From positions 60,001 through 92,000 of the forward strand of contig NW_008806276.1 of NCBI RefSeq assembly GCF_000400465.1: a stretch of 32,000 nucleotides of DNA, given 5' to 3'. The notes below the pieces were generated by a model. The model had not been told where the DNA came from and did no database searches. It worked only from the letters and a program-made list of their open reading frames with translations. Every line of letters begins with the position of its first letter. The first letter of the stretch is position 1. Origin of the DNA: Wallemia ichthyophaga EXF-994 (Eukaryota > Fungi > Basidiomycota). This document shows positions 4,873 through 27,255 of the stretch, piece by piece. The position numbers and the translations under genes were made by a program.

Positions 4873-5099
4873 ATATCTTTACGAGTTTTGTATCATGACC
4901 AATATTACCTAGATGCCATGCGGTATAGCACAATTCCTAAGAAAATCAGGCTGTTTGAATAATGATACACACGTTCAAGACTGGAAGAGCTGATAATGTA
5001 CAAAGCATAATACATGATTGTGATACCGTATGTTATTTGCGTCTAGGTGTATGTGAAGGCTATGAGGGCTACTTGTCTACCGGAGAAGAGTATACTAGT

Positions 5100-5850
5100 T
5101 GTACGTGTTGTCCTGTTTCCATGTCTGTGCTTTCTATCCGTCTATCCTCTCTGGTGAGCACAAGTCCCCAGCAGCTACACATGTTAGCTGTGTATCGAGA
5201 ATAAGAATGCTACAACTTACATATATCCAATGAGCGTAGAGATGAAGCAAAACTGCTTTCGTCAGCGAATAAGATCACAACAAAGCACTCCTCACAAGAA
5301 CAGCTAAATCGAGAAGAACGTTGAGCAGGGTTGATGTAGAATTGTTCAAGGCTGGTGGTAGGAAGAATGCTGAGCTGTTTATTAGACGCCATTGAGCAGT
5401 TGAATCACCGCACCAATCAAGCCACCGAGTTGATCAACAGCAGCAGCAGCAGCAGGATCAGCATCAGCATTAACAACATTTGCAATCTCAATCATTTACA
5501 ACGTTGGCTGCTCCACTTGAAGACATCCCTTTACAAACTCAACCGACATCTCGCAGTCACATCCGGTGCTTCAGGCACCTTATCGACTGATTCTTGTGAC
5601 AGATTAAATTAGCCTGAGCTTGAGCTTGAGTTTCAAGTTGAATTAATTACGATAGAATTTACAGTAAAAGTTGAAAGTAACTTCTGTGCTCCCTCATTCA
5701 TTCAAATCCTACCCTCATAGCACCCTTTCCACTCGCTTACCATTTTTACGCCTCGTGATCTTGAGGCGCGAGACATTCAGCGGATTGATGCAGCGGCTTG
5801 AAACAACGGAGATAGCGATTTATGGAAAATTATGCTTATGGTCAGGAGGC
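5100..5850 (-). pseudogene. Degenerate remnant of a probable spliced, Leu/Ala-rich secreted-protein gene
   Basis: Intron-like elements on the minus strand (GTAAGT..GCTAAC..TAG at ~5220-5174; GTAAGC at ~5742). Fragments such as IANVVNADADPAAAAAVDQLGGLIGAVIQLLNG and STLLNVLLDLAVLVRSALL are broken by stops and frame changes. A diverged paralog lies at ~17580-18340. Confidence 0.4.
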
Positions 5851-6244
5851 GTATCAGCTAGAGTACTTCAAGACGCTTCATTCGAGTAGCTAGAGATGGA
5901 AGACAGGATTGAATGCTCATAGTGTAACTGAATCAGTGTTACATTCGGCATCCTGATCACCTATTATAAATCGTCCTTCCTGCCCTCTCCATGACTTAAT
6001 TTCACTGCTACCATCGCCCAGATGCAATCGATTATGTTGATTCTACAGCAATTAGACGCACCACGAGAAGGCCATTTTGATCTGCTTTCACTCCACTCTA
6101 CTCAAAGGATGTACCCATTTCGACACTGACAAGCTCGCGTCGATATACTGCGCCTCCTTTGACGCGAAGTATCATTCCTTGGTCGAGTGTATAAATAAGG
6201 CTGTTCTTTTTCACTATCTCTCATCCCGCTTCTGCCACTTAAGT

Positions 6245-6616
6245 ATGAAGTTTCCAGTCACTTTAGTTCTATTAGTCGCTGTTCTTTGTTGTCTTGTCGA
6301 AGCAGCCAAGCGCCGGGGGTACAATAGAGGCATCCTCGACAAGAAAGGTATGATGCAAAAGAGAGGTATCCTCGGTAAGAAGGAATTTGGCAAGAGATAC
6401 ATCCTCGATAAGAGCGAATACGTCAAGAGAGGCGGATTGACTGATATCCTGGACAAGAGAGATATCTACCGCAGACAAGAAAATAATTACGACTTCGACG
6501 AACTGACAGACATGAAGAGGGGTATCCTCAGTCGTCAAGATAACGATGACCTCGAGGAACTTTCAGCCATCAAGAGAGAGATTCTCAAGCGTCAAGATGA
6601 TGAAACGCTCGAATGA
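6245..6616 (+). CDS. Secreted Kex2-type repeat precursor (KEP-like), 123 aa
   Basis: ATG at 6245 gives signal peptide MKFPVTLVLLVAVLCCLVEA, followed by 8 KR sites separating short related segments (GILDK, GILGK, YILDK, DILDK, GILSR, EILKR). Confidence 0.8.
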   Translation: MKFPVTLVLLVAVLCCLVEAAKRRGYNRGILDKKGMMQKRGILGKKEFGKRYILDKSEYVKRGGLTDILDKRDIYRRQENNYDFDELTDMKRGILSRQDNDDLEELSAIKREILKRQDDETLE

Positions 6617-6801
6617 CTAGCTATTGGGTAAATATCAGGTCCACTCGCCATATTTTTAATATGATTCTCTGAATTCACGATTGTATGTTTTAGAAATAAA
6701 TGTTGTTTACTGTAATTAATGAAAGACATTAAAGATATCAGAGGGGTATATAAATAATCTAAAAGAGTGCAATAGCACTGACCGGACTCGCCTTGAAGGC
6801 G

Positions 6802-7119
6802 TCAGTACGAGAGCGAGTATTGATTAGTGTGTTTGAAATCATAGACCATTACGCTGAGCTCGTAGATGTAGTCGTTGAGGTCGTCGCGCTCCTGCTTCAA
6901 TTGCTTGTTGAAACTTCTCAAGTACTCAACTTCAGCTTTCAAGGAGGATTGCAAGCGTTGACGTTCGCCGTGCCGAGTATTGCAGCAGAGATGCAGAGAC
7001 TCCGCCTCATTCTTAGTAATTTCTGAGCCAGAGACATCGCGTACAATGTCTATTCCTGTTAGCAAGTGCTGATATAGATCACAATCAATCGTCTTACTTT
7101 TCTCGCTTTTTTGGATCAT
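6802..7119 (-). CDS. Hypothetical ~105-aa protein with C-terminal coiled coil
   Basis: ATG-initiated ORF containing LQSSLKAEVEYLRSFNKQLKQERDDLNDYIYEL. A 3' intron (GTAATG..ACTGAC..AAG) may extend it to a TAG at ~6759. Confidence 0.5.
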   Translation of the reverse strand: MIQKSEKSKTIDCDLYQHLLTGIDIVRDVSGSEITKNEAESLHLCCNTRHGERQRLQSSLKAEVEYLRSFNKQLKQERDDLNDYIYELSVMVYDFKHTNQYSLSY

Positions 7120-7363
7120 TTATGCAGTGAGGATATAAGAGGAGAAGAAACTGAGTAGACTCTGCACGGACTGCGTGGTCCCGCTCGGAATCCGCTCATA
7201 CGAATCTAGGGTGGTGAAAATCCGTGCCTGGAAACATCACAAGTATGTTTCCGGTAACAGTCGATGTTAAGCCTTCCTCAAACACTTGCAGATAAATGTT
7301 CAAGTAATATTGCGTGTATTATCTATCAACATCTCTATCAAGCTACTTATTACGAAGACATGA

Positions 7364-7704
7364 TCAGCTATCCTGCCTCTCGAGCTCATCTAGTACCTTG
7401 TACGCTCCCTTCTCTTCCAATGCCTTGATGAAAAGGATCCGTGCCATCTCGTCGTCCCCGAAGCGATGGAGCTTAAGCACCTCATTTCGGTAGTCAGGCC
7501 TAACTCCGAAAAGAGCGTGTGCAGCTGTATCCGTATCCAGCGAGAAGTTTGCGTTTGAGTGGGAGCGTGAATAACTACCAAAAGCACTCTTGATGTCGAG
7601 CATGTCAGGTTGATCTTCTTCGATAGCAAAATTAAACTTACAGATACCGGAGCAGCAAGCACAGAGCCTAAAACTATCCCAGTAAAGGCTGCTGCAAGCT
7701 TCAT
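7364..7704 (-). CDS. Small secreted protein, 95 aa, 2 exons
   Basis: Exon 7704-7642 encodes MKLAAAFTGIVLGSVLAAPVS (signal peptide). A 53-nt intron at 7641-7589 (GTAAGT..CTGAC..AAG) follows, then exon 7588-7364 SAFGSYSRSHSNANF...DELERQDS*. The splice joins two ORF-track frames in phase 0. Confidence 0.78.
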
Positions 7705-7906
7705 GAGTTGAAGATGTGGCGGATGTAAGTTCTCGCTGAGCAAAAGCTCCCGAGGGGGAAGCTTTCGGGTAAAAGCATACGCTAGCTCTTCTAATAATTT
7801 TAAATGATGATGTCATTTAATAATTAGGAGCATAAAGAGTCGTAAATGGCTATCATTGTATTATCGTAAATATTGGCACATTTCAATTACATCAAAGAAT
7901 CAAATA

Positions 7907-8506
7907 TTATCCCCCGCATGTTCCGTGAATAAGGAATCTCGAAAACCCTTCAATGTTTGACCTACCTTCGAGAAATAACTGGCTACCTCCGCAGGGAGTT
8001 TTGCTCCAATTAATAGTCTTATCTGAGTGATGATTAAGCACGGCATATCCATGCCAACTATCGTCAAAGTTTTGCTTTATACATTTAGTAGATTCCTTCG
8101 GTTTCTCGTTTGTTAATTTTTGGTTCATCGCACTTGATATCTTTTCCAAATGTGGATACTTGGTACATGAATTTTCGACGTGGAATTTGTAAGTGTTGTC
8201 TGATATTGCCGTTTCAATCACATTACATCTATATGTATACCAATCATAGATGGCAATGCCACTGTCATACGCAGCTCTCAGACCAAATGACAAGATTCCG
8301 ATAGAGAACCAGATTGGAACCTGATGCGTTGGAGAGCTATTGACAGGCAAATATTTAGGAAAAACCACGCGCATACTTTGAGATATAGAGTAAAAAATAG
8401 AAACATTTTCGAATGTCAAGCATTCATTATGAATGAAGTAGTTAGTGATAAGCTTGAGAAATAATGCTGCGCAATTGATGGCTATGACTTTGTGAATCGT
8501 TACCAT
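7907..8506 (-). CDS. Cys-containing CSS2-like / killer-toxin-like protein, copy A (199 aa)
   Basis: Hydrophobic N-terminus and internal helix, then C-x19-C..EKISSAM..KCIKQNFDDSWHGYAVL..PCGG. This resembles from memory the C..C..C-x7-WxGY..CG pattern of fungal CSS2-type domains. Not verified by search. Confidence 0.5.
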   Translation of the reverse strand: MVTIHKVIAINCAALFLKLITNYFIHNECLTFENVSIFYSISQSMRVVFPKYLPVNSSPTHQVPIWFSIGILSFGLRAAYDSGIAIYDWYTYRCNVIETAISDNTYKFHVENSCTKYPHLEKISSAMNQKLTNEKPKESTKCIKQNFDDSWHGYAVLNHHSDKTINWSKTPCGGSQLFLEGRSNIEGFSRFLIHGTCGG

Positions 8507-8938
8507 ATGATGAGAGTTGAGAGGATAGGACGCGACAGTGGATAGGCTGCTCGAAAGATTTCAATAATGATAACATTTCGTCTTTGACATTAATTCTGAT
8601 TACTTACTGAACACCCACTTCCAACTCCCAAACCTCTAGATGAGACGCTTCAATTTTAAACTTAGAATTCCATAAACCGTAATTGTTTATTCAATTTACT
8701 TGAAGCTCCTCCGGCTGAAACTTTGTGTCATTTTGTCTACGACAACAGGAAACGCCCAATATTGAGACAATGACGCATTAAAGTACACGCCTTTTTATTT
8801 GTTTACAAGCTTCAGCCGAATCACTTGGCAGTTTCATTAAATGACGAGATGTGATGATAGAAGTGAGAAACATCAGCCCAGCTGGCTTTATAAGAAGCGC
8901 TATATCTTTCTTTCTTCTTCACAACTAAGAAAATTGAA

Positions 8939-9659
8939 ATGTACTTCAACAACGTCAAAGCTCTCGCCGTTCTCGCCTTTACTAGCGCCATCGTATTAGT
9001 AGCCGCTGCACCTAACCCAGCTGGCAACATCTCGTATCGCGGAGATGTAGGAGATGTCGGTCACAAGAATGAAAACTCTGAAAAGGGTGTGGATGCCAAG
9101 AACAACGATAATTACGACAAATACGATAAGCAAGACAAGGAATCTCACGAAGAGGCGCTCAAGAAGCACAGCAAAGAGGTCGAAAAGCAGAAAATGCTGA
9201 CGAAAGAAGCTGCCGAAAAGAACAAAGCAAATGACAAGGTTGGTAATGACGAAGCTTGCTGAAAATTGGCTTACACAGTAATAGAACCAGAAGACAGACG
9301 AGTACTGGAAGGGTGAGAAGAAAGATGACAACACGTACGACAACAAGTCTGGTAATAAGAAGCAAGACAATCAGTACGACACCAGTAAGAAACAAGATTC
9401 TGGCAAGCACGATACCGACATGAAACAAGAGCACTACAACGACAAAAAGCAAGACAATCACTACGACACCAGTAAGAAACAAGATTCTGGCAAGCACGAT
9501 ACCGACATGAAACAAGAGCACTACAACGACAAAAAGCAAGACAATCACTACGACACCAGTAAGAAACAAGATTCTGGCAAGCACGATACCGACATGAAAC
9601 AAGAACACGACAACGACAAGAAGCAAGACAATCATTACGATACCGACAAGAAAGACTAA
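8939..9659 (+). CDS. Secreted K/D/H-rich repeat protein, copy A (224 aa; 2 full 29-aa repeats), 2 exons
   Basis: Signal peptide MYFNNVKALAVLAFTSAIVLVAA. A phase-0 intron at 9239-9284 (GTTGGT..TAG) joins ...KANDK to NQKTDEYWKGEKKDD..., in frame with the MKQEHYNDKKQDNHYDTSKKQDSGKHDTD repeats. Confidence 0.82.
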
Positions 9660-10010
9660 GCTTCGATTGTTTGTTAAGCTTATTGTACACTGTGTTCATG
9701 AATGATTCTATCATTGAACAAAGATATTAATTTTGAGTATTCAGCAAGGTGCTTTGTTCTTTACCCCGATAGGGCCTCTCGCTTATCAAGCTATTCCAAA
9801 AATAAAATCTTACTTATCCCAGCTGAGTTTGAACCCTTCAAGTTTGTCTCCTTTGTTCCACACTCTCACTACCGTAATTGATCCCTAAATCCGTCTTATC
9901 CACCTTATTTAACACAAGATACTTGACATGGACAAGCGAGATATCTAAGCGACCGTGACTATCTACCTATACAGTAATTCAAGACCACATCTAGCTCAAA
10001 TAACATCGGG

Positions 10011-11201
10011 ATGAAGTTGGAATTAGTCGCGATAGCTGCAATTATTCAGTTTGTCTTAGCGAAAGAGCCCTGGGATGACTTTAAGCATATCAAGGCATCG
10101 TTATTTGCTAATATAGTCACTTTTCACATTAAGAACACCATCATTGCTTGACGGACAAAAGTCAGAATTTTGATATTGCTGTTAATGGTATACCTTTTGA
10201 TACAAGCGTGTCATACTGAACAGGGGCCAGATTCGGACCGAATAGTGAGCCAATTCCCAAGCTCGAATATATTGCTGATTTGCTTAGGCATTAGTCAGGG
10301 ATCACGTCACCAAGACCCAGCAAATGCATGGTCGCACTTCTGGGAGGCCAACCCTTACGCGAAAGGGGTCAAAATTTTAGACTGTGGGGATATTCCAGTG
10401 ATTACAGTAGACAACCAGATGTCATAAAAAAGCACCGAAGCTGCGCACGACAATCTTCTCAATCGACCAACTGCAAGTAAGCATCTAAAGCATCCAATGC
10501 TACTCACATTTGGAGGTGACCACTCAATTGAGTTGCCAATTCTGCGTACTCTAAAAAAGGCGCGTAATCCGCGCTATTCATCGAAGTACATTTCCCGACA
10601 CTCATCTCTAGGTACACGGTCCTATATCGCTTATTCAGATCGACTCTCATATCGATACATGGTCTTCAGGCAAAAAGTATGGGTTCAGTGATAAGCACGA
10701 CACAGCACCTGTCTCTCATGGCAACATGCTTTGGCATGCGTCGGAGGAAAATTTGCTTACCTCGAGATCGATCCAAGCTGGAATAAGGACGCGTTTTACA
10801 AAAGAAAGGGATATTACAGATAATAAAGAGTTTGGTATAAAAATGATCACGATCGATGCTATAGATGAAATCGGTGCAAAGGGAATTGCAGATCAAATTA
10901 GAAAAAGGGTCGGCAATACGGCAGCCTATTTGACAATTGATATAGACTCAGTTGATCCTGCCTTTGCCGGCGCCACTGGAACACCCGAGCCTGGTGGGCT
11001 TACCACGCGCGAAGCCAAGACTATTTTAAGGAATCTGAAGGGTTTAAATTTTGTTGGGGCAGATATAGTCGAAGTTATTCACCATATGACGCTGGAAGTG
11101 AGCTAAGACAGATGGTCGCGGCTGATGTGGCACATGAAATTCTTCAATTACTGACTACGTCACCAATTATGGAATCCAGCGTAATTCACGATGAGTTGTG
11201 A
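10011..11201 (+). pseudogene. Agmatinase/ureohydrolase-family pseudogene with signal peptide and C-terminal HDEL, copy A
   Basis: Motifs FDIAVNGIPFDTSVSY*TGARFGP, GGDHSI, DSHIDTW and DIDSVDPAFAGATGTPEPGG. Lesions: -1 frameshift at ~10124, TAA 10130, TGA 10217, TAA 10425, GC donor at 10560, -1 frameshift at ~11080. The restored end reads ...SSVIHDEL*. Confidence 0.88.
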
Positions 11202-11638
11202 ATGCATTTAAATAAGCTTTCACTAATGATTTACGCTTCTAAAGGTCTCTTTTCGTATTTATTACATCACATAGCTAAGAAATGCACATCGATGCCCATA
11301 TTTTGCCACTTATACGACTTCCTACGAGCTTGTATGTCAAAAACAAGCAATCTAAATGCTGCTAAATTCAACACTTTCTATTCTCCATTTATTCAATGTC
11401 ATATATGGAACTATCACCAGGAACTCACCAGGAATTCACCGATTAGGAAGGAAGATAAAGATATCTAGGCACTTCATTATCAAACCTACATGCAAGAATA
11501 CTATCGCTTAATTTCCGTCGCTTAATTGACCTTCACATGATTTATTGACCAGAACATACAGTTGATAAGATGTCTGATAAGGCGTCGATAAGGATGAGGA
11601 TAAGTAGGGTCGTTTTTTCAATAACTCTTCTTTCACCA

Positions 11639-13598
11639 ATGAATAAAGAAGAAAAAAGGAGCCTTCCATAAACTCAGCGTGTTTTTTTTTTTTTAACAAT
11701 GCCGAGCCGGAGTCTTCAACAAAAAGGGGCTCTCATACCAGCCGAAATCTGAATAGACGTCATATCCAAATTTACGGAATAGGTGGTGTGAGTTGAAAGA
11801 GAAAGGAAAGGATTGATTGCTGATCTAAAAAGGTTATTGGGACGGCGGTGATTGTCACACTAGGAGAACAGAACACAGAAGCAGGTGTGTTTGTCTCGCG
11901 TAAAAATAAAACCACTCAAAACTCACAGGACCGCTATTCTTGTTGCTGGCTTATACCTTCTGGAGCTGCATAATCTACATCGTGAATTAATGTGTAGCAG
12001 TGCCCACTTGTCGTCTACCAGTAGAGAATGATGCATTTGTGGATTTCGCTGGTAATTATATATCACCAGCGTTTGGTGTGTCTATTGGGTACAATTACTT
12101 TTTGTGCATGGTGAGAGCTATTGATTGAAGTGTAATCACGTAACAACATCTTCAGATAGGTCTTCTCTGCTTTGAAATTACAAACTTCGGAAACGCTATC
12201 AACTACTGGACCACAGAGCCATTACACCCGGCTATAATGGTATCTGCGAGTATTGCAGCTTATGTCCTCATACACTCATGGGACTCGAGATGGTTCGGGG
12301 AGTCAGAGTTTGTGGGTTAGTTTGGAGATATTGCTTATTTTCTAAAAGCTATGCAGTGGATCGTTATCTTGAAACTCTTATTGCTGGTAATGTGTGTATT
12401 GTATACTTTAGTCACTATGTGCGGCGGAAATCCCCTCAATGGCGCTTATGGATTCAGATATTGGCGCGACCCTGGTCCAATAGTGGGTAATACAGCTTTA
12501 ACGCAACTGCAGGCGTTTCTAGCAGCGCTTTTGGTGCCTCATTTGCCGTCGCAGGACCAGACATGCTCTCAATAATCTCTGGAGAAGCTAGAGATCCTCG
12601 TAGAGTGATGCCGATCGCATTCAGAACAGTATTTGTTTGGTTGTTTGTGTTCTTCATCCTTTCAACACTCGCTGTTGGTATTGTTATATCTTCAGAGGAT
12701 AAAATTTTACTCAACTCCATCAAGAACAACGGAGCTGGAGCTGCCCAATCACCTTACGGAGCTAGCATGATGAGGCTGAAGATCAAAAGGCTTCCTCATC
12801 TAGTTAACGCCTCGATTACTACTAGCATTTTTAGTGCTGGATCAGCATTCTTTTTCAATTCATTACGTACACTGCACGGCTTGGCTGTTCAAGGGTTTGG
12901 CCCAGTTATCTTTAAACGTGTAAATAGAAATGGTGTTCCCTACGCAACGATTTTTGTTACAACGGCTTTCGCCTGCTTGAGCTACTTGAAAATTGGTAAT
13001 GGTAGCTCGAAGGTCCTCGATTGGTTCATTGGTGAGCGTCAGAAACACAAAGCTATTTCAACTGCTGACATGAGATCAAGGTATCTCTACCGCTGCGCAA
13101 CTGATCACTTGATGCGTTATTTGTGTAACATATTTGCGCTGGGAGAAGGCGATGAAGGTGCAAAGTTTGTGGGAGACTGAAAATTTAAATTATCGCTCTA
13201 AGCTCATGCCTTATGGTGCTTGGTGAGTTTACTGAGTCTTTGTCGTACCGGTAAGCTGACGTAGCCGAGGTTTGCTCTATTTTGCGCAACGGCAGTGACG
13301 TTAATAAACGGCTATACGGTTTTCTAGATGGAAACTGGGATATTGCTGACTTGTGTGTTGGAATTTGGAATTCTTGCCAAACTAATACCACATCAGCTTC
13401 TTTACTTACTTCTCACCGATATGCTTCGTGGTGCTTGGTGTTGGATATAGTGTGATCAAGAAAGAGGGGCTGGTTAGTCCTGACAAGGCAGACTTTTTCA
13501 CCGAGATGAAGGAGATCGACGAACACGAGAATTCACTGCTTGCACAAGAGGAGGAGAAACCTTTTTCAGCGAAGAAGGCTATTAATTGGATTCTTTAG
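11639..13598 (+). pseudogene. Amino-acid/polyamine permease (YAT/APC family, Agp2-like) pseudogene
   Basis: Motifs LNRRHIQIYGIGG|VIGT, WFGESEF|W, TMCGGNP..GFRYWRDPG, GEARDPRR and NRNGVPY. Lesions: frame break after ATG 11639, TAA 11988, frameshift ~12530, TGA 13110 (where W is expected), frameshift ~13323. Confidence 0.85.
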
Positions 13599-17181: not shown

Positions 17182-17579
17182 TGCTTTTCAGGTCGAAAAT
17201 ATTTAATAGTATTAAAAAGGACAATATATGGCGTTTATTGAGCGATTGAGAATTTTCATCATCATCGGTCTAACTTTTGCCGTCCAAATTTGACTGGTTA
17301 ATGAGACAAGCACAGCTTTGAAGTAACTTCGGCTTAACATTCACCGGCTCTGCTGATGTCATTGCAACATAAAGTTGAGTTTAATTAGAGATTTTGCAAG
17401 TGACGAAAATAACGACAATATGGATGAAAATTGAGCTTTGTATGGCTTTTTTATATACATTTTACAATCATAATGTTCTTAATGCAGTGTTTTGTTGCTG
17501 GATGAGTGAATAAAGGAAACGCGTCTAGCTATTGAAGGCGCTGAGAGCTATTTTGTCTATTTGAGAAGAGTAAGTCACA

Positions 17580-18828: not shown

Positions 18829-19200
18829 ATGAAGTTTCCAGTCACTTTAGTTCTATTAGTCGCTGTTCTTTGTTGTCTTGTCGAAGCAGCCAAGCGCCGG
18901 GGGTACAATAGAGGCATCCTCGACAAGAAAGGTATGATGCAAAAGAGAGGTATCCTCGGTAAGAAGGAATTTGGCAAGAGATACATCCTCGATAAGAGCG
19001 AATACGTCAAGAGAGGCGGATTGACTGATATCCTGGACAAGAGAGATATCTACCGCAGACAAGAAAATAATTACGACTTCGACGAACTGACAGACATGAA
19101 GAGGGGTATCCTCAGTCGTCAAGATAACGATGACCTCGAGGAACTTTCAGCCATCAAGAGAGAGATTCTCAAGCGTCAAGATGATGAAACGCTCGAATGA
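18829..19200 (+). CDS. Secreted Kex2-type repeat precursor, copy B
   Basis: Same protein sequence as 6245-6616. Confidence 0.8.
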   Translation: MKFPVTLVLLVAVLCCLVEAAKRRGYNRGILDKKGMMQKRGILGKKEFGKRYILDKSEYVKRGGLTDILDKRDIYRRQENNYDFDELTDMKRGILSRQDNDDLEELSAIKREILKRQDDETLE

Positions 19201-19385
19201 CTAGCTATTGGGTAAATATCAGGTCCACTCGCCATATTTTTAATATGATTCTCTGAATTCACGATTGTATGTTTTAGAAATAAATGTTGTTTACTGTAAT
19301 TAATGAAAGACATTAAAGATATCAGAGGGGTATATAAATAATCTAAAAGAGTGCAATAGCACTGACCGGACTCGCCTTGAAGGCG

Positions 19386-19703
19386 TCAGTACGAGAGCGA
19401 GTATTGATTAGTGTGTTTGAAATCATAGACCATTACGCTGAGCTCGTAGATGTAGTCGTTGAGGTCGTCGCGCTCCTGCTTCAATTGCTTGTTGAAACTT
19501 CTCAAGTACTCAACTTCAGCTTTCAAGGAGGATTGCAAGCGTTGACGTTCGCCGTGCCGAGTATTGCAGCAGAGATGCAGAGACTCCGCCTCATTCTTAG
19601 TAATTTCTGAGCCAGAGACATCGCGTACAATGTCTATTCCTGTTAGCAAGTGCTGATATAGATCACAATCAATCGTCTTACTTTTCTCGCTTTTTTGGAT
19701 CAT
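19386..19703 (-). CDS. Hypothetical coiled-coil protein, copy B
   Basis: Identical to 6802-7119. Confidence 0.5.
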   Translation of the reverse strand: MIQKSEKSKTIDCDLYQHLLTGIDIVRDVSGSEITKNEAESLHLCCNTRHGERQRLQSSLKAEVEYLRSFNKQLKQERDDLNDYIYELSVMVYDFKHTNQYSLSY

Positions 19704-19947
19704 TTATGCAGTGAGGATATAAGAGGAGAAGAAACTGAGTAGACTCTGCACGGACTGCGTGGTCCCGCTCGGAATCCGCTCATACGAATCTAGGGTGGTG
19801 AAAATCCGTGCCTGGAAACATCACAAGTATGTTTCCGGTAACAGTCGATGTTAAGCCTTCCTCAAACACTTGCAGATAAATGTTCAAGTAATATTGCGTG
19901 TATTATCTATCAACATCTCTATCAAGCTACTTATTACGAAGACATGA

Positions 19948-20288
19948 TCAGCTATCCTGCCTCTCGAGCTCATCTAGTACCTTGTACGCTCCCTTCTCTT
20001 CCAATGCCTTGATGAAAAGGATCCGTGCCATCTCGTCGTCCCCGAAGCGATGGAGCTTAAGCACCTCATTTCGGTAGTCAGGCCTAACTCCGAAAAGAGC
20101 GTGTGCAGCTGTATCCGTATCCAGCGAGAAGTTTGCGTTTGAGTGGGAGCGTGAATAACTACCAAAAGCACTCTTGATGTCGAGCATGTCAGGTTGATCT
20201 TCTTCGATAGCAAAATTAAACTTACAGATACCGGAGCAGCAAGCACAGAGCCTAAAACTATCCCAGTAAAGGCTGCTGCAAGCTTCAT
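19948..20288 (-). CDS. Small secreted 95-aa protein, copy B
   Basis: Identical to 7364-7704, including the 53-nt intron. Confidence 0.78.
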
Positions 20289-20483
20289 GAGTTGAAGATG
20301 TGGCGGATGTAAGTTCTCGCTGAGCAAAAGCTCCCGAGGGGGAAGCTTTCGGGTAAAAGCATACGCTAGCTCTTCTAATAATTTTAAATGATGATGTCAT
20401 TTAATAATTAGGAGCATAAAGAGTCGTAAATGGCTATCATTGTATTATCGTAAATATTGGCACATTTCAATTACATCAAAGAA

Positions 20484-21092
20484 TCAAATATTATCCCCCG
20501 CATGTTCCGTGAAGAACTGGAATCTTGCAATCCCTTCAATATCTAGCTTACCTTCGAAAAATAACTGACTACCTCCGCAAGGACTTTTGCTCAAATCAAT
20601 AGTCTTATCTGAGTGATCATTAAGTACGGCGTATCCATGCCAACTATCGTCAAACTTTTGCTTTATACATTTAGTAGACCCCCTCGGTTTCTCGTTTGTT
20701 AACTTGTGGTTCATCGCACTTGATATCTTTTCCAAATGTGGATACTTGGTACATGAATTTTCGACGTGGAATTTGTAAGTGTTGTCTGATATTGCCGTTT
20801 CAATCACATTACATCTATATGTATACCAATCATAGATGGCAATGCCACTGTCATACGCAGCTCTCAGACCAAATGACAAGATTCCGATAGAGAACCAGAT
20901 TGGAACCTGATGCGTTGGAGAGCTATTGACAGGCAAATATTTAGGAAAAACCACGCGCATACTTTGAGATATAGAGTAAAAAATAGAAACATTTTCGAAT
21001 GTCAAGCATTCATTATGAATGAAGTAGTTAGTGATAAGCTTGAGAAATAATGCTGCGCAATTGATGGCTATGACTTTGTGAATCGTTACCAT
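20484..21092 (-). CDS. CSS2-like / killer-toxin-like protein, copy B (202 aa)
   Basis: Same N-terminal ~128 aa as copy A, with a diverged C-terminus ending FQFFTEHAGDNI. Confidence 0.5.
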   Translation of the reverse strand: MVTIHKVIAINCAALFLKLITNYFIHNECLTFENVSIFYSISQSMRVVFPKYLPVNSSPTHQVPIWFSIGILSFGLRAAYDSGIAIYDWYTYRCNVIETAISDNTYKFHVENSCTKYPHLEKISSAMNHKLTNEKPRGSTKCIKQKFDDSWHGYAVLNDHSDKTIDLSKSPCGGSQLFFEGKLDIEGIARFQFFTEHAGDNI

Positions 21093-21524
21093 ATGATGAG
21101 AGTTGAGAGGATAGGACGCGACAGTGGATAGGCTGCTCGAAAGATTTCAATAATGATAACATTTCGTCTTTGACATTAATTCTGATTACTTACTGAACAC
21201 CCACTTCCAACTCCCAAACCTCTAGATGAGACGCTTCAATTTTAAACTTAGAATTCCATAAACCGTAATTGTTTATTCAATTTACTTGAAGCTCCTCCGG
21301 CTGAAACTTTGTGTCATTTTGTCTACGACAACAGGAAACGCCCAATATTGAGACAATGACGCATTAAAGTACACGCCTTTTTATTTGTTTACAAGCTTCA
21401 GCCGAATCACTTGGCAGTTTCATTAAATGACGAGATGTGATGATAGAAGTGAGAAACATCAGCCCAGCTGGCTTTATAAGAAGCGCTATATCTTTCTTTC
21501 TTCTTCACAACTAAGAAAATTGAA

Positions 21525-22941
21525 ATGTACTTCAACAACGTCAAAGCTCTCGCCGTTCTCGCCTTTACTAGCGCCATCGTATTAGTAGCCGCTGCACCTA
21601 ACCCAGCTGGCAACATCTCGTATCGCGGAGATGTAGGAGATGTCGGTCACAAGAATGAAAACTCTGAAAAGGGTGTGGATGCCAAGAACAACGATAATTA
21701 CGACAAATACGATAAGCAAGACAAGGAATCTCACGAAGAGGCGCTCAAGAAGCACAGCAAAGAGGTCGAAAAGCAGAAAATGCTGACGAAAGAAGCTGCC
21801 GAAAAGAACAAAGCAAATGACAAGGTTGGTAATGACGAAGCTTGCTGAAAATTGGCTTACACAGTAATAGAACCAGAAGACAGACGAGTACTGGAAGGGT
21901 GAGAAGAAAGATGACAACACGTACGACAACAAGTCTGGTAATAAGAAGCAAGACAATCAGTACGACACCAGTAAGAAACAAGATTCTGGCAAGCACGATA
22001 CCGACATGAAACAAGAGCACTACAACGACAAAAAGCAAGACAATCACTACGACACCAGTAAGAAACAAGATTCTGGCAAGCACGATACCGACATGAAACA
22101 AGAGCACTACAACGACAAAAAGCAAGACAATCACTACGACACCAGTAAGAAACAAGATTCTGGCAAGCACGATACCGACATGAAACAAGAGCACTACAAC
22201 GACAAAAAGCAAGACAATCACTACGACACCAGTAAGAAACAAGATTCTGGCAAGCACGATACCGACATGAAACAAGAGCACTACAACGACAAAAAGCAAG
22301 ACAATCACTACGACACCAGTAAGAAACAAGATTCTGGCAAGCACGATACCGACATGAAACAAGAGCACTACAACGACAAAAAGCAAGACAATCACTACGA
22401 CACCAGTAAGAAACAAGATTCTGGCAAGCACGATACCGACATGAAACAAGAGCACTACAACGACAAAAAGCAAGACAATCACTACGACACCAGTAAGAAA
22501 CAAGATTCTGGCAAGCACGATACCGACATGAAACAAGAGCACTACAACGACAAAAAGCAAGACAATCACTACGACACCAGTAAGAAACAAGATTCTGGCA
22601 AGCACGATACCGACATGAAACAAGAGCACTACAACGACAAAAAGCAAGACAATCACTACGACACCAGTAAGAAACAAGATTCTGGCAAGCACGATACCGA
22701 CATGAAACAAGAGCACTACAACGACAAAAAGCAAGACAATCACTACGACACCAGTAAGAAACAAGATTCTGGCAAGCACGATACCGACATGAAACAAGAG
22801 CACTACAACGACAAAAAGCAAGACAATCACTACGACACCAGTAAGAAACAAGATTCTGGCAAGCACGATACCGACATGAAACAAGAACACGACAACGACA
22901 AGAAGCAAGACAATCATTACGATACCGACAAGAAAGACTAA
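21525..22941 (+). CDS. Secreted K/D/H-rich repeat protein, copy B (456 aa; 10 full repeats)
   Basis: Same exon 1 and intron (21825-21870) as copy A. ORF 22006-22941 is 10 x 29 aa plus a 21-aa terminal variant. Confidence 0.82.
22006..22875 (+). repeat. Coding minisatellite: 10 identical 87-bp units
   Basis: Unit atgaaacaagagcactacaacgacaaaaagcaagacaatcactacgacaccagtaagaaacaagattctggcaagcacgataccgac is repeated head-to-tail with no spacers. Confidence 0.96.
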
Positions 22942-23292
22942 GCTTCGATTGTTTGTTAAGCTTATTGTACACTGTGTTCATGAATGATTCTATCATTGAA
23001 CAAAGATATTAATTTTGAGTATTCAGCAAGGTGCTTTGTTCTTTACCCCGATAGGGCCTCTCGCTTATCAAGCTATTCCAAAAATAAAATCTTACTTATC
23101 CCAGCTGAGTTTGAACCCTTCAAGTTTGTCTCCTTTGTTCCACACTCTCACTACCGTAATTGATCCCTAAATCCGTCTTATCCACCTTATTTAACACAAG
23201 ATACTTGACATGGACAAGCGAGATATCTAAGCGACCGTGACTATCTACCTATACAGTAATTCAAGACCACATCTAGCTCAAATAACATCGGG

Positions 23293-24483
23293 ATGAAGTT
23301 GGAATTAGTCGCGATAGCTGCAATTATTCAGTTTGTCTTAGCGAAAGAGCCCTGGGATGACTTTAAGCATATCAAGGCATCGTTATTTGCTAATATAGTC
23401 ACTTTTCACATTAAGAACACCATCATTGCTTGACGGACAAAAGTCAGAATTTTGATATTGCTGTTAATGGTATACCTTTTGATACAAGCGTGTCATACTG
23501 AACAGGGGCCAGATTCGGACCGAATAGTGAGCCAATTCCCAAGCTCGAATATATTGCTGATTTGCTTAGGCATTAGTCAGGGATCACGTCACCAAGACCC
23601 AGCAAATGCATGGTCGCACTTCTGGGAGGCCAACCCTTACGCGAAAGGGGTCAAAATTTTAGACTGTGGGGATATTCCAGTGATTACAGTAGACAACCAG
23701 ATGTCATAAAAAAGCACCGAAGCTGCGCACGACAATCTTCTCAATCGACCAACTGCAAGTAAGCATCTAAAGCATCCAATGCTACTCACATTTGGAGGTG
23801 ACCACTCAATTGAGTTGCCAATTCTGCGTACTCTAAAAAAGGCGCGTAATCCGCGCTATTCATCGAAGTACATTTCCCGACACTCATCTCTAGGTACACG
23901 GTCCTATATCGCTTATTCAGATCGACTCTCATATCGATACATGGTCTTCAGGCAAAAAGTATGGGTTCAGTGATAAGCACGACACAGCACCTGTCTCTCA
24001 TGGCAACATGCTTTGGCATGCGTCGGAGGAAAATTTGCTTACCTCGAGATCGATCCAAGCTGGAATAAGGACGCGTTTTACAAAAGAAAGGGATATTACA
24101 GATAATAAAGAGTTTGGTATAAAAATGATCACGATCGATGCTATAGATGAAATCGGTGCAAAGGGAATTGCAGATCAAATTAGAAAAAGGGTCGGCAATA
24201 CGGCAGCCTATTTGACAATTGATATAGACTCAGTTGATCCTGCCTTTGCCGGCGCCACTGGAACACCCGAGCCTGGTGGGCTTACCACGCGCGAAGCCAA
24301 GACTATTTTAAGGAATCTGAAGGGTTTAAATTTTGTTGGGGCAGATATAGTCGAAGTTATTCACCATATGACGCTGGAAGTGAGCTAAGACAGATGGTCG
24401 CGGCTGATGTGGCACATGAAATTCTTCAATTACTGACTACGTCACCAATTATGGAATCCAGCGTAATTCACGATGAGTTGTGA
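23293..24483 (+). pseudogene. Agmatinase-family pseudogene, copy B
   Basis: Same sequence and same lesions as 10011-11201. Confidence 0.88.
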
Positions 24484-24920
24484 ATGCATTTAAATAAGCT
24501 TTCACTAATGATTTACGCTTCTAAAGGTCTCTTTTCGTATTTATTACATCACATAGCTAAGAAATGCACATCGATGCCCATATTTTGCCACTTATACGAC
24601 TTCCTACGAGCTTGTATGTCAAAAACAAGCAATCTAAATGCTGCTAAATTCAACACTTTCTATTCTCCATTTATTCAATGTCATATATGGAACTATCACC
24701 AGGAACTCACCAGGAATTCACCGATTAGGAAGGAAGATAAAGATATCTAGGCACTTCATTATCAAACCTACATGCAAGAATACTATCGCTTAATTTCCGT
24801 CGCTTAATTGACCTTCACATGATTTATTGACCAGAACATACAGTTGATAAGATGTCTGATAAGGCGTCGATAAGGATGAGGATAAGTAGGGTCGTTTTTT
24901 CAATAACTCTTCTTTCACCA

Positions 24921-25533
24921 ATGAATAAAGAAGAAAAAAGGAGCCTTCCATAAACTCAGCGTGTTTTTTTTTTTTTAACAATGCCGAGCCGGAGTCTTCA
25001 ACAAAAAGGGGCTCTCATACCAGCCGAAATCTGAATAGACGTCATATCCAAATTTACGGAATAGGTGGTGTGAGTTGAAAGAGAAAGGAAAGGATTGATT
25101 GCTGATCTAAAAAGGTTATTGGGACGGCGGTGATTGTCACACTAGGAGAACAGAACACAGAAGCAGGTGTGTTTGTCTCGCGTAAAAATAAAACCACTCA
25201 AAACTCACAGGACCGCTATTCTTGTTGCTGGCTTATACCTTCTGGAGCTGCATAATCTACATCGTGAATTAATGTGTAGCAGTGCCCACTTGTCGTCTAC
25301 CAGTAGAGAATGATGCATTTGTGGATTTCGCTGGTAATTATATATCACCAGCGTTTGGTGTGTCTATTGGGTACAATTACTTTTTGTGCATGGTGAGAGC
25401 TATTGATTGAAGTGTAATCACGTAACAACATCTTCAGATAGGTCTTCTCTGCTTTGAAATTACAAACTTCGGAAACGCTATCAACTACTGGACCACAGAG
25501 CCATTACACCCGGCTATAATGGTATCTGCGAGT
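24921..25533 (+). pseudogene. 5' fragment of the permease pseudogene, truncated by the copy C junction
   Basis: Matches 11639-12251, including the premature TAA; it then switches abruptly to the antisense of the toxin-like gene. Confidence 0.85.
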
Positions 25534-26112
25534 GAACTGGAATCTTGCAATCCCTTCAATATCTAGCTTACCTTCGAAAAATAACTGACTACCTCCGCAA
25601 GGACTTTTGCTCAAATCAATAGTCTTATCTGAGTGATCATTAAGTACGGCGTATCCATGCCAACTATCGTCAAACTTTTGCTTTATACATTTAGTAGACC
25701 CCCTCGGTTTCTCGTTTGTTAACTTGTGGTTCATCGCACTTGATATCTTTTCCAAATGTGGATACTTGGTACATGAATTTTCCACGTAGAATTTGTAAGT
25801 GTTGTCTGATATTGCCGTTTCAATCACATTACATCTATATGTATACCAATCATAGATGGCAATGCCACTGTCATACGCAGCTCTCAGACCAAATGACAAG
25901 ATTCCGATAGAGAACCAGATTGGAACCTGATGCGTTGGAGAGCTATTGACAGGCAAATATTTAGGAAAAACCACGCGCATACTTTGAGATATAGAGTAAA
26001 AAATAGAAACATTTTCGAATGTCAAGCATTCATTATGAATGAAGTAGTTAGTGATAAGCTTGAGAAATAATGCTGCGCAATTGATGGCTATGACTTTGTG
26101 AATCGTTACCAT
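25504..26112 (-). CDS. CSS2-like / killer-toxin-like protein, copy C (202 aa; chimeric C-terminus)
   Basis: B-type sequence with an H-to-Y change (KFYVENS). The last residues TRRYHYSRV* are read from the antisense strand of the permease fragment. Confidence 0.5.
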   Translation of the reverse strand: MVTIHKVIAINCAALFLKLITNYFIHNECLTFENVSIFYSISQSMRVVFPKYLPVNSSPTHQVPIWFSIGILSFGLRAAYDSGIAIYDWYTYRCNVIETAISDNTYKFYVENSCTKYPHLEKISSAMNHKLTNEKPRGSTKCIKQKFDDSWHGYAVLNDHSDKTIDLSKSPCGGSQLFFEGKLDIEGIARFQFTRRYHYSRV

Positions 26113-27255
26113 ATGATGAGAGTTGAGAGGATAGGACGCGACAGTGGATAGGCTGCTCGAAAGATTTCAATAATGATAACATTTCGTCTTTGACATTAAT
26201 TCTGATTACTTACTGAACACCCACTTCCAACTCCCAAACCTCTAGATGAGACGCTTCAATTTTAAACTTAGAATTCCATAAACCGTAATTGTTTATTCAA
26301 TTTACTTGAAGCTCCTCCGGCTGAAACTTTGTGTCATTTTGTCTACGACAACAGGAAACGCCCAATATTGAGACAATGACGCATTAAAGTACACGCCTTT
26401 TTATTTGTTTACAAGCTTCAGCCGAATCACTTGGCAGTTTCATTAAATGACGAGATGTGATGATAGAAGTGAGAAACATCAGCCCAGCTGGCTTTATAAG
26501 AAGCGCTATATCTTTCTTTCTTCTTCACAACTAAGAAAATTGAAATGTACTTCAACAACGTCAAAGCTCTCGCCGTTCTCGCCTTTACTAGCGCCATCGT
26601 ATTAGTAGCCGCTGCACCTAACCCAGCTGGCAACATCTCGTATCGCGGAGATGTAGGAGATGTCGGTCACAAGAATGAAAACTCTGAAAAGGGTGTGGAT
26701 GCCAAGAACAACGATAATTACGACAAATACGATAAGCAAGACAAGGAATCTCACGAAGAGGCGCTCAAGAAGCACAGCAAAGAGGTCGAAAAGCAGAAAA
26801 TGCTGACGAAAGAAGCTGCCGAAAAGAACAAAGCAAATGACAAGGTTGGTAATGACGAAGCTTGCTGAAAATTGGCTTACACAGTAATAGAACCAGAAGA
26901 CAGACGAGTACTGGAAGGGTGAGAAGAAAGATGACAACACGTACGACAACAAGTCTGGTAATAAGAAGCAAGACAATCAGTACGACACCAGTAAGAAACA
27001 AGATTCTGGCAAGCACGATACCGACATGAAACAAGAGCACTACAACGACAAAAAGCAAGACAATCACTACGACACCAGTAAGAAACAAGATTCTGGCAAG
27101 CACGATACCGACATGAAACAAGAACACGACAACGACAAGAAGCAAGACAATCACTACGATACCGACAAGAAAGACTAAGCTTCGATTGTTTGTTAAGCTT
27201 ATTGTACACTGTGTTCATACATGATTCTATCATTGAACAAAGATATTAATTTTAG
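25534..27255. repeat. Segmental duplication copy C (matches copy B from 20514, offset +5020)
   Basis: Starts at gaactggaatcttgcaatccc, a B-type allele. Identity ends just after agatattaatttt at ~27253. Confidence 0.93.
26545..27178 (+). CDS. Secreted K/D/H-rich repeat protein, copy C (195 aa; 1 full repeat)
   Basis: Same structure as copy A but one 87-bp unit shorter; stop TAA at 27176-27178. Confidence 0.82.

Follow-up and report, generated by a model that had tools for sequence, protein, structure and literature searches.

A species-restricted, copy-number-variable cassette of orphan genes in Wallemia ichthyophaga, probably shaped by gene conversion between old repeats

The stretch of DNA analysed here, referred to as the window, comprises 32,000 nucleotides of contig NW_008806276.1 (positions 60,001 to 92,000) from Wallemia ichthyophaga EXF-994, and corresponds to 50001-82000 of scaffold KE007226.1. 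Between a spartin/Senescence-domain gene on the left (GME821, 3527-4872, forward strand, with PF06911 in L001; RPKM ~93 and 83) and MDM10 on the right (28315-29689, reverse strand, the PF12519 gene in L002 and L003) lies an island with a GC content of 41.7%, compared with 50.7% and 50.5% (~50.6%) in its flanks, and the original impression of an AT-rich island is borne out by base composition. A salt-induced hydrophobin gene is situated two genes away. A self-BLAST of the window matches copy A (5998-12251) to copy B (18582-25533) at 99-99.9% identity, while copy C (25534-27258) matches both 7933-9740 and 20514-22143 at 98-99.6% identity. A cassette present twice in full, with its last two genes a third time, is therefore what the given reference sequence contains.

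The outer, nonhomogenised part of cassette A, P (5039-5972), holds a 97-aa membrane-protein gene (GME822, 5069-5495, reverse strand), with an RPKM of 76 at 10% NaCl and 12 at 30% NaCl. The adjoining homogenised repeat segment, X (5998-7929), contains the genes for a KR-repeat precursor and for proteins of 89 and 95 aa. The 89-aa gene (6802-7119, reverse strand, one intron), whose model was reproduced, encodes a coiled-coil-like protein with no signal peptide, weak, sub-threshold matches to coiled-coil Pfam families and a protein cluster restricted to W. ichthyophaga. The 95-aa secreted protein (7364-7704, reverse strand, one intron) has a splice model equal to EOR03539 and the signal peptide MKLAAAFTGIVLGSVLAAPVSS; its AlphaFold2 model has a pLDDT of 59.5, with a helical C-terminal half and no fold match, and a large protein search found no homologue outside the species. 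Next is a Cys-containing open reading frame of 199 aa (7907-8506, reverse strand, likely start M45), which is not annotated in the reference and encodes 4-5 cysteines. It is open in every copy and in strains L003 and L005, its 3′ tail is altered by indels of one base each in L004 and in L006, and its single match, P0028, is a Logan variant with 77% identity. The last gene (8939-9659, forward strand, a splice model with one 46-nt intron) encodes a 224-aa protein with a variable number of tandem repeats (VNTR), a very hydrophilic polyampholyte which is His- and Asp-rich, has 21% K, 17% D, 5.0% Gly and no Cys, a GRAVY of -2.42 and no Pfam family. The signal-like N-termini predicted for these proteins are clearly recognisable in the KR precursor, in the VNTR protein and, once spliced, in the 95-aa protein, while the Cys-containing frame is present but has an ambiguous N-terminus, its hydrophobic stretch being internal only.

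The KR precursor (6245-6616, forward strand) is an open reading frame of 123 aa that has a signal peptide and lacks a transmembrane segment. Eight KR sites are present where 1.6 would be expected (P ~1e-5), and dibasic sites number 11 in total in 103 residues. A recurring KR-x-I-L-x-K/R unit occurs in two classes of repeat, 11 and ~19 residues long, and the repeats are imperfect, with TRF reporting 76-80% identity at the DNA level and ~2 copies. Once the basic residues are removed the predicted peptides are short, with a net charge that is acidic or neutral. Stop-loss and truncated variants of the gene occur, and protein searches with the precursor returned matches from W. ichthyophaga only. 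The precursor is a candidate Kex2-processed repeat protein (KEP), a family for which definitions have been given by Le Marquer et al. 2019 (PMC6339444) and Umemura 2020 (PMC7329392); this literature counts six KEPs for W. ichthyophaga. For the secreted proteins of the cassette as a whole, Pfam gave nothing significant, large protein searches gave matches from W. ichthyophaga itself only, and structure models were of low confidence with no fold match. The cassette genes are species-restricted orphans.

Downstream of these genes, segment Z of copy A (9741-12251, forward strand) holds a ureohydrolase pseudogene and the 5′ part of an amino-acid permease pseudogene. The ureohydrolase is agmatinase/guanidinobutyrase-like (Pfam Arginase) and is interrupted by a TAA stop in frame (10425-10427) and, near 11075, by a frameshift that follows DIVEV, both crossed by an alignment to a PDB protein; A, B and one other strain share exactly these lesions. 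The permease is split over three frames, recognisable as pieces of Pfam AA_permease, and its remainder lies in a single-copy middle segment, U (12252-18581). In every strain examined, the enzyme gene and the permease gene are both dead. The earlier view that the co-duplicated metabolic genes are dead while the secreted genes keep open frames is thus upheld, as is the presence of intact Zn2Cys6 (14256-16064, reverse strand) and RTA1 (16186-17181, reverse strand, 300-aa model) genes between A and B. Their adjacency suggests that the middle genes formed one nitrogen-catabolism cluster, and the Zn2Cys6 and RTA1 genes are more plausibly left over from this dead cluster than in place to regulate the secreted genes and export their products. 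The RTA1 gene is down at high salt. The middle segment also holds P′ (17521-18402), which aligns to P and carries a diverged paralogue of the 97-aa gene.

Self-BLAST, TRF and gene models resolve copy B into X, Y and Z, with the KR precursor at 18829-19200 (forward), the 89-aa gene at 19386-19703 (reverse), the 95-aa gene at 19948-20288 (reverse), the Cys-containing frame at 20484-21092 (reverse), the VNTR gene at 21525-22941 (forward) and the ureohydrolase pseudogene. By self-BLAST and gene models copy C consists of Y only, with a Cys-containing frame at 25504-26112 (reverse), the tail of which extends into Z of copy B, and a VNTR gene at 26545-27178 (forward). TRF counts 3.3, 11.3 and 2.3 of the 87-bp VNTR units in A, B and C.

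The copies are a mosaic of very different levels of identity. P and P′ are 69% identical over 970 columns, with self-BLAST blocks at 80%. Within X there are four differences between A and B, all at 6012-6116, and the 1.8 kb from 6117 to 7929 is identical. A 190-bp patch follows (7930-8120), within the 3′ half of the Cys-containing frame, in which a site table and junction sequences distinguish an A-type and a C-type that differ at ~16% of bases. Beyond this patch the copies are identical, apart from two SNPs, up to Z, which is 100% identical between A and B over 2877 bp. In all, ~3.3 kb of A and B is base-identical between diverged outer parts, and this identity is likely to be the product of gene conversion. 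Since the outer parts of the repeat are only 69-80% identical, the duplication is old and would have been homogenised later, and the tandem amplification first proposed is not supported as a recent event. The proposed local diversification fares no better: the difference between copies of the Cys-containing frame is a relic patch with dS ~0.2 and dN/dS ~0.3, giving no sign of positive selection in the sole diverged coding patch. Across strains, A-type and C-type patches are shuffled, and L004 is a mosaic of both. The VNTR counts, for their part, come from a short-read assembly.

Comparison with other strains shows that the locus differs in copy number. In a few strains, L003 and L004 among them, contigs of 79-108 kb run from the spartin gene to MDM10 with one cassette; these strains are without the middle segment, RTA1 and Zn2Cys6 included, and retain the secreted genes. 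In ~12 strains, for which independent assemblies support two cassettes on either side of a middle segment, the cassette is on short collapsed contigs, and several of these strains also have a 9.2-9.7 kb contig of the middle (Z-U); the contig census is 11 short, 1 medium and 3 long. L010 and L011 cover 9250-19019 of the window in the two-cassette structure, and the reference-free Logan contig L012, assembled from k-mers of a different sample, covers 9705-18635, ending exactly at the repeat edges. U is contiguous with Z and with X of copy B in L010, L011 and L012, and the left part of copy B, from U into X, is supported by L009, L010 and L012. The supporting strain assemblies are reference-guided (IDBA-Hybrid) and the Logan contigs, whose sample origin is not given, are alone fully independent. 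Two full cassettes are independently confirmed by L010-L012 and, as strains with one cassette and strains with two are both seen, copy number truly varies, as had been predicted. The one-cassette alleles probably arose through unequal homologous recombination between copies. Without an outgroup the order of events may be read either way, from two ancestral cassettes down to one or from a single ancestral cassette through a later insertion.

The third, partial copy is a different matter, being found in the short-read reference only. This reference is a SOAPdenovo assembly (K=21) of Illumina reads from libraries of 500 bp and 2 kb, and the right part of copy B (the 11-unit VNTR and Z) is also seen nowhere else. 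The odds are roughly even that the extra material and the 11-unit VNTR represent a very recent rearrangement private to this strain or an error in assembling short reads. If the reference is right, EXF-994 has 2.5 copies and has undergone active amplification by a recent tandem or template-switch duplication, and we give this somewhat less than an even chance. In its favour, the Z/Y junction that defines copy C (25533/25534) has microhomology of at most 2 bp and no long shared k-mer, which a de Bruijn mis-join normally requires, and there are no Ns in the window. Copy B is also the hybrid expected from recombination between a C-type Y and the Y of copy A, with a C-type patch and with sites 8177 and 8182 and the right end A-type. 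Against it, the left edge of C (25534) matches to the base the start of the diverged patch (7930), a graph branch point, for which the chance is ~0.1-0.2% for a random breakpoint. Z is 100% identical between A and B, ~100-nt reads at K=21 cannot establish the length of the 981-bp array, whose 87-bp units are 99% identical, and a collapsed X segment is left over in the reference assembly itself as contig KE007282.1. The junction is absent from the other strains and samples, no other assembly compared has a branch at the equivalent of 12251 (L012 and L014 pass through it unbranched), and L003, which has the arrangement of copy C's Y with the right flank at 99.92% identity and flanks identical to the reference, has one cassette only. 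Taken as a whole the original observation is partly confirmed, with the assembly as the limiting factor, and the interpretation built on it also has partial support.

We therefore favour, with a probability of about 0.6, a low-copy repeat of two old paralogous cassettes subject to conversion and to copy-number change by recombination between the repeats. On this model a species-restricted ~4.7-kb cassette, encoding the 97-aa membrane protein, the KR propeptide, the 89-aa protein, the 95-aa secreted protein, the Cys-containing frame and the secreted hydrophilic repeat protein, would bracket a decaying nitrogen-catabolism cluster in two directly oriented copies. Gene conversion would homogenise ~3.3 kb, leaving the outer 0.9 kb 20-30% diverged and the 190-bp patch ~16% diverged, and unequal homologous recombination would generate one-cassette alleles without the middle cluster, with a change in dosage as an incidental consequence of the repeats. 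After entry into the secretory pathway, the KR precursor would be cleaved by Golgi Kex2 at its eight KR sites, giving short, mostly acidic peptides, and the VNTR protein, once secreted, would be a disordered polymer of balanced charge. Judging from composition and from the behaviour of other Kex2-processed precursors, our guess is that peptide signalling or a function in the extracellular matrix or at the cell surface is most likely, rather than a role as a toxin.

It is unlikely that the locus is a salt or low-water-activity module in which the VNTR protein and KR peptides condition a thick wall or matrix for water or cation retention, with dosage tuned by copy number. Such a role is suggested by the signal peptide, extreme hydrophilicity, balanced K/D charge and His/Asp-richness of the VNTR protein, by the confinement of the cassette genes to an obligate halophile and by the nearby hydrophobin gene. 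A survey also places Wallemia and other osmotolerant fungi among those whose Kex2-processed precursors are numerous for the size of the secretome (PMC6339444). The predicted stress regulation is not borne out, however, as the four secreted genes are missing from the 10% vs 30% NaCl differential-expression table of the single public salt transcriptome (Zajc et al. 2013), a comparison confounded by reads mapping to both copies. The neighbouring 97-aa and RTA1 genes fall rather than rise at high salt, the VNTR protein has too little Gly for a hydrophilin, and one-cassette strains have been isolated as well.

The four genes are also missing from the high-expression part of the Zajc et al. 2013 expression table, so some may be weakly expressed or gene-prediction artefacts. 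This lack of expression support would fit a second improbable reading, in which most cassette frames are nonfunctional or proto-genes in AT-rich, fast-evolving intergenic DNA and the repeat is neutral structural variation. The frames are all orphans without domains in DNA of low GC, their models are ab initio (GeneMark-ES), and the tail frameshifts of the Cys-containing frame and the KR stop-loss and truncated variants point the same way. Against this, frames remain open from strain to strain even where blocks have diverged deeply, the Cys-containing frame having 30 substitutions in 110 nt without a stop, and dN/dS is ~0.3. The KR sites are enriched and the signal peptide is canonical. The conservation in P′ of the exons of the old 97-aa paralogue is an argument that at least some of the cassette has long been under constraint.

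Some fungal toxins are excised from Kex2-type precursors. An antagonism system of toxin, effector or killer peptides, amplified and diversified under selection with RTA1 as exporter or self-protection and Zn2Cys6 as regulator, would accommodate the Kex2-type precursor, the small secreted proteins (one with 4-5 Cys), the adjoining membrane protein and transcription factor genes and the strain-to-strain copy-number variation, but is very improbable given no similarity to toxin, killer-protein or immunity families, no Pfam or fold support, no called gene of the DUF3328/UstYa or another tailoring type, peptides unlike cationic amphipathic lytic ones, a low dN/dS, the setting of RTA1 and Zn2Cys6 beside two dead catabolic genes as in a decayed metabolic cluster, and one-cassette strains that keep the secreted genes without them, which is unexpected if both were needed for export, immunity or expression.

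The individual parts of the locus resemble several known systems. The KR precursor shares an ER signal peptide, KR sites and repeats with KEPs and belongs with the stand-alone type without homologues, which makes up 2560 of 7878 in the survey of Umemura (PMC7329392); unlike in typical KEPs the repeats are imperfect, and the released peptides, with processing only predicted, would be heterogeneous. It lacks the Ste13 dipeptide signature and is thus not alpha-pheromone-like. Ustiloxin-type RiPP clusters (dikaritins) also have a signal peptide, KR-separated repeats and an adjoining Zn2Cys6 regulator gene, but combine a KEP precursor with DUF3328/UstYa genes, whereas here no DUF3328, tyrosinase or methyltransferase was called in 20-kb neighbourhoods, the conserved Y-x-I-x core is missing and the enzyme genes alongside are dead ones from primary nitrogen catabolism. 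The VNTR protein is like fungal cell-surface tandem-repeat proteins in being secreted and in its in-frame 87-bp minisatellite, the unit number of which differs between copies and strains (as counted in short-read assemblies), but has no Ser/Thr-rich stalk, adhesin domain or GPI signal, its C-terminus being hydrophilic. It shares extreme hydrophilicity with hydrophilin/LEA-type disordered proteins, although its 5% Gly is below the >6% hydrophilin criterion and it has no LEA/dehydrin Pfam match. The side-by-side agmatinase/guanidinobutyrase-like, AA_permease and Zn2Cys6/Fungal_trans genes recall fungal nitrogen-catabolic clusters, but here the enzyme and permease are pseudogenes. As a whole the locus is most like low-copy repeats with concerted evolution and nonallelic homologous recombination (NAHR), such as subtelomeric and other fungal gene families and human segmental duplications, with which it shares direct repeats that are 100% identical over at least 1.8 kb and lie 12.6 kb from each other, outer edges that have diverged, breakpoints of deletion alleles inside the repeats and shuffled patch haplotypes. 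The mechanism is an ordinary one; what differs here is the cargo, which is made up of orphan secreted genes, and that the deleted interval takes with it two intact genes, RTA1 and Zn2Cys6.

The island is best explained as two old cassettes of orphan secreted-protein genes that flank a decayed catabolic cluster, were homogenised through gene conversion and vary in number through recombination between the repeats. In a self-BLAST of the window, cassette copy A (5998-12251) pairs with copy B (18582-25533) at 99.0% identity over 5998-9644 and 99.93% over 9357-12251, copy C (25534-27258) pairs with 7933-9740 and 20514-22143, and the 123-aa KR-repeat protein (6245-6616) matches exactly at two places on KE007226.1 (GCA_000400465.1), which sets the window at KE007226.1:50001-82000. 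The repeat consists of segment X (5998-7929), with the genes for the KR precursor (6245-6616 +), an 89-aa protein (6802-7119 -) and a 95-aa protein (7364-7704 -); segment Y (7930-9740), with a Cys ORF (7907-8506 -) and the VNTR gene (8939-9659 +); and segment Z (9741-12251), followed by the single-copy segment U (12252-18581). The Cys ORF is absent from the reference annotation and is the Cys-containing protein of the original prediction. An in-frame 87-bp minisatellite runs to 3.3 units in A, 11.3 in B and 2.3 in C (TRF), and the VNTR proteins have 224, 456 and 195 aa respectively. GC content across 5000-27258 is 41.7%, lower than that of the flanks (50.7% and 50.5%), which bears out an AT-richness first judged by eye, and the window has no Ns. 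What had been described from the sequence is on the whole largely correct. The reference genes were predicted ab initio by GeneMark-ES (PMC3849046), and the models were regenerated here by intron search.

Identity between A and B is uneven along the repeat, without a uniform 99%. The two X segments differ at four sites only, all within 6012-6116, and are identical from there to 7929, a stretch of 1.8 kb, and Z(A) and Z(B) show 100% identity over 9375-12251. Y opens with a patch (7930-8120) of about 30 differences (~16%), beyond which it is identical over 1.2 kb save at sites 8177 and 8182, where C alone differs. Homology persists past the identical block at low identity, as the outer part of A (P, 5039-5972) aligns with a paralogue within U (P', 17521-18402) at 69% identity over 970 columns, with blocks at 80%, and in P' the exons of a diverged paralogue to the 97-aa membrane-protein gene can still be recognised. 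Within the patch dS is ~0.2, comparable to the divergence of P from P'. Copies that diverge deeply at their edges and in one island but are identical between these argue for gene conversion between old paralogues, a process that would homogenise the two cassettes; paralogy that reaches beyond the identical block at far lower identity is the pattern looked for in concerted evolution. Judged from these alignments the duplication is old and homogenised, and the ancestral cassette is about 5039-9740. The evidence therefore runs against the proposal of tandem amplification, in that old paralogues would have been made alike by gene conversion. The paralogue of the 97-aa gene in P' is unannotated (17552-17881 -), and its exon-like stretches are 40-73% identical at the protein level.

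The number of cassettes varies among strains. Twenty-one strains have been sequenced and assembled with the reference-guided IDBA-Hybrid (Gostinčar et al. 2019, PMC6738226). Two long strain contigs, L003 (108 kb) and L004 (79 kb), have one cassette between the spartin gene and MDM10, with P-X joined to the Y-flank and Z-U missing. In about 12 other strains the cassette is found collapsed into contigs of 2-3.5 kb, whose left ends fall at 5998-6317 and whose right ends are mostly in or beside the VNTR. In several of these strains a further contig of 9.2-9.7 kb carries RTA1 and Zn2Cys6 together with the permease and the arginase-family gene. Strain contig L010 corresponds to window 9250-19019, that is Y(A)-Z-U-X(B), and the Logan contig L012 (SRR25393947, 8931 bp) to window 9705-18635, ending exactly at the repeat edges. 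Since L012 is a k-mer assembly made without a reference, it independently confirms the two-cassette arrangement. With one cassette in L003 and L004 and the two-cassette adjacency in L010 and L012, copy number is truly polymorphic, as had been predicted. A single true copy, with the whole locus an assembly artefact, had been named as the outcome that would undo the prediction, and is ruled out by the Y-Z-U-X adjacency in reference-free and other-strain contigs. A census of contigs for the 89-aa gene variant gave 11 short, 1 medium and 3 long.

The simplest mechanism would be unequal homologous recombination inside X or Y, deleting Z-U together with its two intact genes; the repeats are direct and of high identity, and the alleles differ by exactly the intervening interval. 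The flanks of L003 (GCA_004918625.1, SPOK01000032.1) equal the reference over ~5 kb on the left and 4.7 kb on the right, yet it has one cassette, and with about 9.7 kb of identical flank the change can be very recent. The difference between L003 and the reference may be a very recent rearrangement, or one of the two assemblies may be wrong at the locus. Patch types are also shuffled across strains, L004 being a mosaic and L005, a collapsed contig, A-type. The Logan contigs (L009 and L012-L015) come from four public runs (SRR25393947, SRR25394065, SRR25394068 and ERR15373361), are 99.7-99.9% identical to the locus, and represent further W. ichthyophaga isolates or samples containing W. ichthyophaga.

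It is somewhat doubtful that the partial copy C and the 11-unit VNTR allele are real in EXF-994, whose reference was put together by SOAPdenovo (K=21) out of Illumina libraries of 500 bp and 2 kb (PMC3849046). At the junction 25533|25534 the permease pseudogene breaks off midway and Y follows; the two share no k-mer there, which speaks for a real event, and microhomology is 2 bp or less. C begins, however, on precisely the base where A-type and C-type sequence first differ (7930), a branch point of the assembly graph. Copy B has a C-type patch and then turns to A-type, as a recombinant hybrid should, but Z(A) is exactly equal to Z(B), the equivalent of 12251 is traversed unbranched in the Logan contigs L012 and L014, and an array of 981 bp made of 99%-identical units is beyond sizing by short reads. 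A leftover X contig is also kept in the same assembly: KE007282.1 (1917 bp) is an unplaced contig that represents the collapsed X repeat (window 6013-7929). This contig covers three of the four A/B-differing sites, being A-type at two and B-type at one, and such a mix of alleles points to repeat copies that were filled into the scaffold without independent assembly. Of the three copies originally predicted, the two full cassettes are upheld by L010 and L012, and the third, partial copy, seen in the reference only, is retained as a candidate.

The decayed catabolic cluster of our preferred account begins in Z with an arginase-family gene (Pfam E 7e-34), the closest structures to which are guanidinopropionase, guanidinobutyrase and agmatinase. 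An uninterrupted ureohydrolase frame through the Mn-binding motifs was not found, as the alignment to 3nip crosses an in-frame TAA at 10425-10427 and the frame shifts between DIVEV and SPYD, with no space for an intron. Both stop and frameshift are identical in Z(A), Z(B) and L010, and the gene models of other strains skip the GGDHS motif. The amino-acid permease gene that begins in Z and runs on into U has Pfam matches spread over three frames; their profile coordinates overlap (61-198, 192-360 and 372-407), and they include internal stops. The co-duplicated metabolic genes are therefore dead, as first proposed. The reference model EOR03541, "General amino acid permease AGP2" (438 aa; 10843-13598 +), is a chimera of ureohydrolase and permease pseudogene exons.

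RTA1 and Zn2Cys6 are intact, again in line with the original prediction. A 300-aa RTA1 model (P0022) covers positions 3-201 of 208 in PF04479 (E 2e-39) and aligns end to end with window 17181-16189 in an open frame, so RTA1 is intact but mis-annotated. In the reference it appears (16186-17181 -) as a truncated 208-aa "RTM1", and the first exon of the 300-aa model starts at 17181. Zn2Cys6 is a 513-aa ORF in the window and a 588-aa model in L010. Exact-protein look-ups gave no record for the 513-aa Zn2Cys6 ORF, a 334-aa PAP2 ORF or the B and C versions of the Cys ORF.

The putative products of the cassettes are probably a Kex2-processed peptide precursor and a secreted disordered protein, for which we infer a cell-surface or signalling role. 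The KR precursor has an N-terminal ER signal peptide, judged by composition (MKFPVTLVLLVAVLCCLVEA; 12-residue Kyte-Doolittle mean 3.55), and a hydrophilic mature part (GRAVY -1.28) without a transmembrane domain. The pipeline of Le Marquer et al. asks that in-silico cleavage at KR and RR give four or more fragments, each two or more residues long, and with 8 KR sites and 1 RR site the precursor does so; the 8 KR compare with 1.6 expected, a 5-fold excess over shuffles (P ~1e-5). Its units (KRGILGKKEFG, KRYILDKSEYV, KRGGLTDILD, KRGILSRQDNDDLEELSAI and KREILKRQ..., plus NRGILDKK) share x-I-L-x and recur as KR-x-I-L-x in two length classes, giving at least three similar peptide repeats between cleavage sites. 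At the DNA level the repeats are imperfect, TRF giving 76-80% identity for the 33-nt and 57-nt periods, and the predicted peptides are short and mostly acidic. [quoted passage not shown] Among its variants from other strains and samples (P0002, P0003 and P0007) are an extension by stop loss (...ETLEWQTIG), a shortened tail (...AIKRDSLASR) and R24G, which abolishes the first KRR site. An ustiloxin-type RiPP (dikaritin) cluster is ruled out, as the tailoring genes (DUF3328/UstYa, tyrosinase and methyltransferase) are missing among the Pfam families of genes called in the 20-kb neighbourhoods of L001-L004.

The VNTR protein has a signal peptide, a very hydrophilic mature part (GRAVY -2.42; 21% K, 17% D), no Cys and no GPI-like tail. 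It matches no Pfam family, and with 5.0% Gly the mature protein falls short of the hydrophilin/LEA threshold of >6%. Each 29-residue unit contains two KK pairs (9270-9659, 21856-22941 and 26876-27178). Le Marquer et al. reported 6 Kex2-processed precursors among 282 secreted proteins of W. ichthyophaga, placed Wallemia among the taxa richer in such precursors, and included a KK-cleavage pass in their pipeline (PMC6339444). The three VNTR proteins might therefore have been counted as Kex2-type precursors, and together with the two KR genes the locus could supply up to five of the six. A further-reaching reading would make the cassette a halophile-specific system of extracellular peptides whose two processed precursors are the KR and VNTR proteins, in which each KK-bounded 29-residue unit could yield two repeated peptides on cleavage, selection acts on dosage and repeat number, and the locus explains much of the reported Kex2-precursor excess of Wallemia; we consider this improbable.

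The 95-aa protein has a signal peptide and a helical C-terminal half (AlphaFold2 without alignment; pLDDT ~75 in this half, 59.5 overall). A Foldseek search of this model against the PDB gave no match at E up to 0.001, a weak fold-level test with a low-confidence model. The Cys ORF is open in all three copies and, in the strains examined, through at least ~175 codons, with four conserved Cys; its 3' tail may be an intron, or else varies through single-base indels. By exhaustive HMMER search one relative only was found among 1.84 billion representatives, its own variant from a Logan sample, the model of which has a pLDDT of 49.9 (AlphaFold2 without alignment). Codons 38-75 (window about 8280-8395; L004-L006 and the Logan variant P0028) form a second deeply diverged block between strains, with ~30 substitutions in 110 nt and no stop, yielding an alternative, more signal-like N-terminus (MGVFSPIYLLFKSSTTRLALILFF...). 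Two old haplotypes are suggested at the start of the Cys ORF as well. Local diversification had been proposed; positive selection on the Cys ORF is ruled out by 6 synonymous and 9 non-synonymous differences (dN/dS ~0.3), which is evidence against the term "diversifying". None of the cassette proteins belongs to a Pfam family (E up to 1 gave sub-threshold noise only), and the searches run found no homologues outside W. ichthyophaga. No similarity to toxin or killer families was found by Pfam, HMMER (Cys ORF) or Foldseek (95-aa protein, low-confidence model), so the suggested toxin or antagonism function has no support.

The salt transcriptome tables were searched by sequence and gene number, with the KR, 89-aa, 95-aa and VNTR genes taken as GME823-826 and GME830-834 by gene order. 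In Table S6 of Zajc et al. the 97-aa gene GME822 (5069-5495 -) falls six-fold, from RPKM 76 in 10% NaCl to 12 in 30%, and RTA1, GME829 (16186-16861 -), two-fold, from 68 to 34. The KR, 89-aa, 95-aa and VNTR genes are missing from Table S6 and from the high-expression part of Table S4, but identical copies make reads multi-map, so that their absence is weak evidence. As far as these parts of the tables go, the proposed role in salt stress has no support. Just outside the window, GME837, by gene order the hydrophobin two genes past MDM10, rises about nine-fold at 30% relative to 10% NaCl. To the right of MDM10, an ORF that adjoins an Rrn7-like gene has an acidic EDDK-type stretch, encoded by a perfect 12-nt repeat at 30252-30280 (+) (GAGGACGATAAG x 2.4).

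[quoted passage not shown] If the account of two old, homogenised cassettes is right, the island would add orphan secreted genes in such an organism, including a candidate Kex2-processed precursor. The analysis also flags problems in the reference genome, namely a possibly spurious 5-kb partial copy, an unreliable VNTR length, a chimeric "AGP2" model of two pseudogenes and a truncated RTA1 model. The locus opens no new class of system; on the same account it would be a clean small-genome case of concerted evolution between old paralogous cassettes, with presence/absence polymorphism of RTA1 and Zn2Cys6 arising from inter-cassette recombination.
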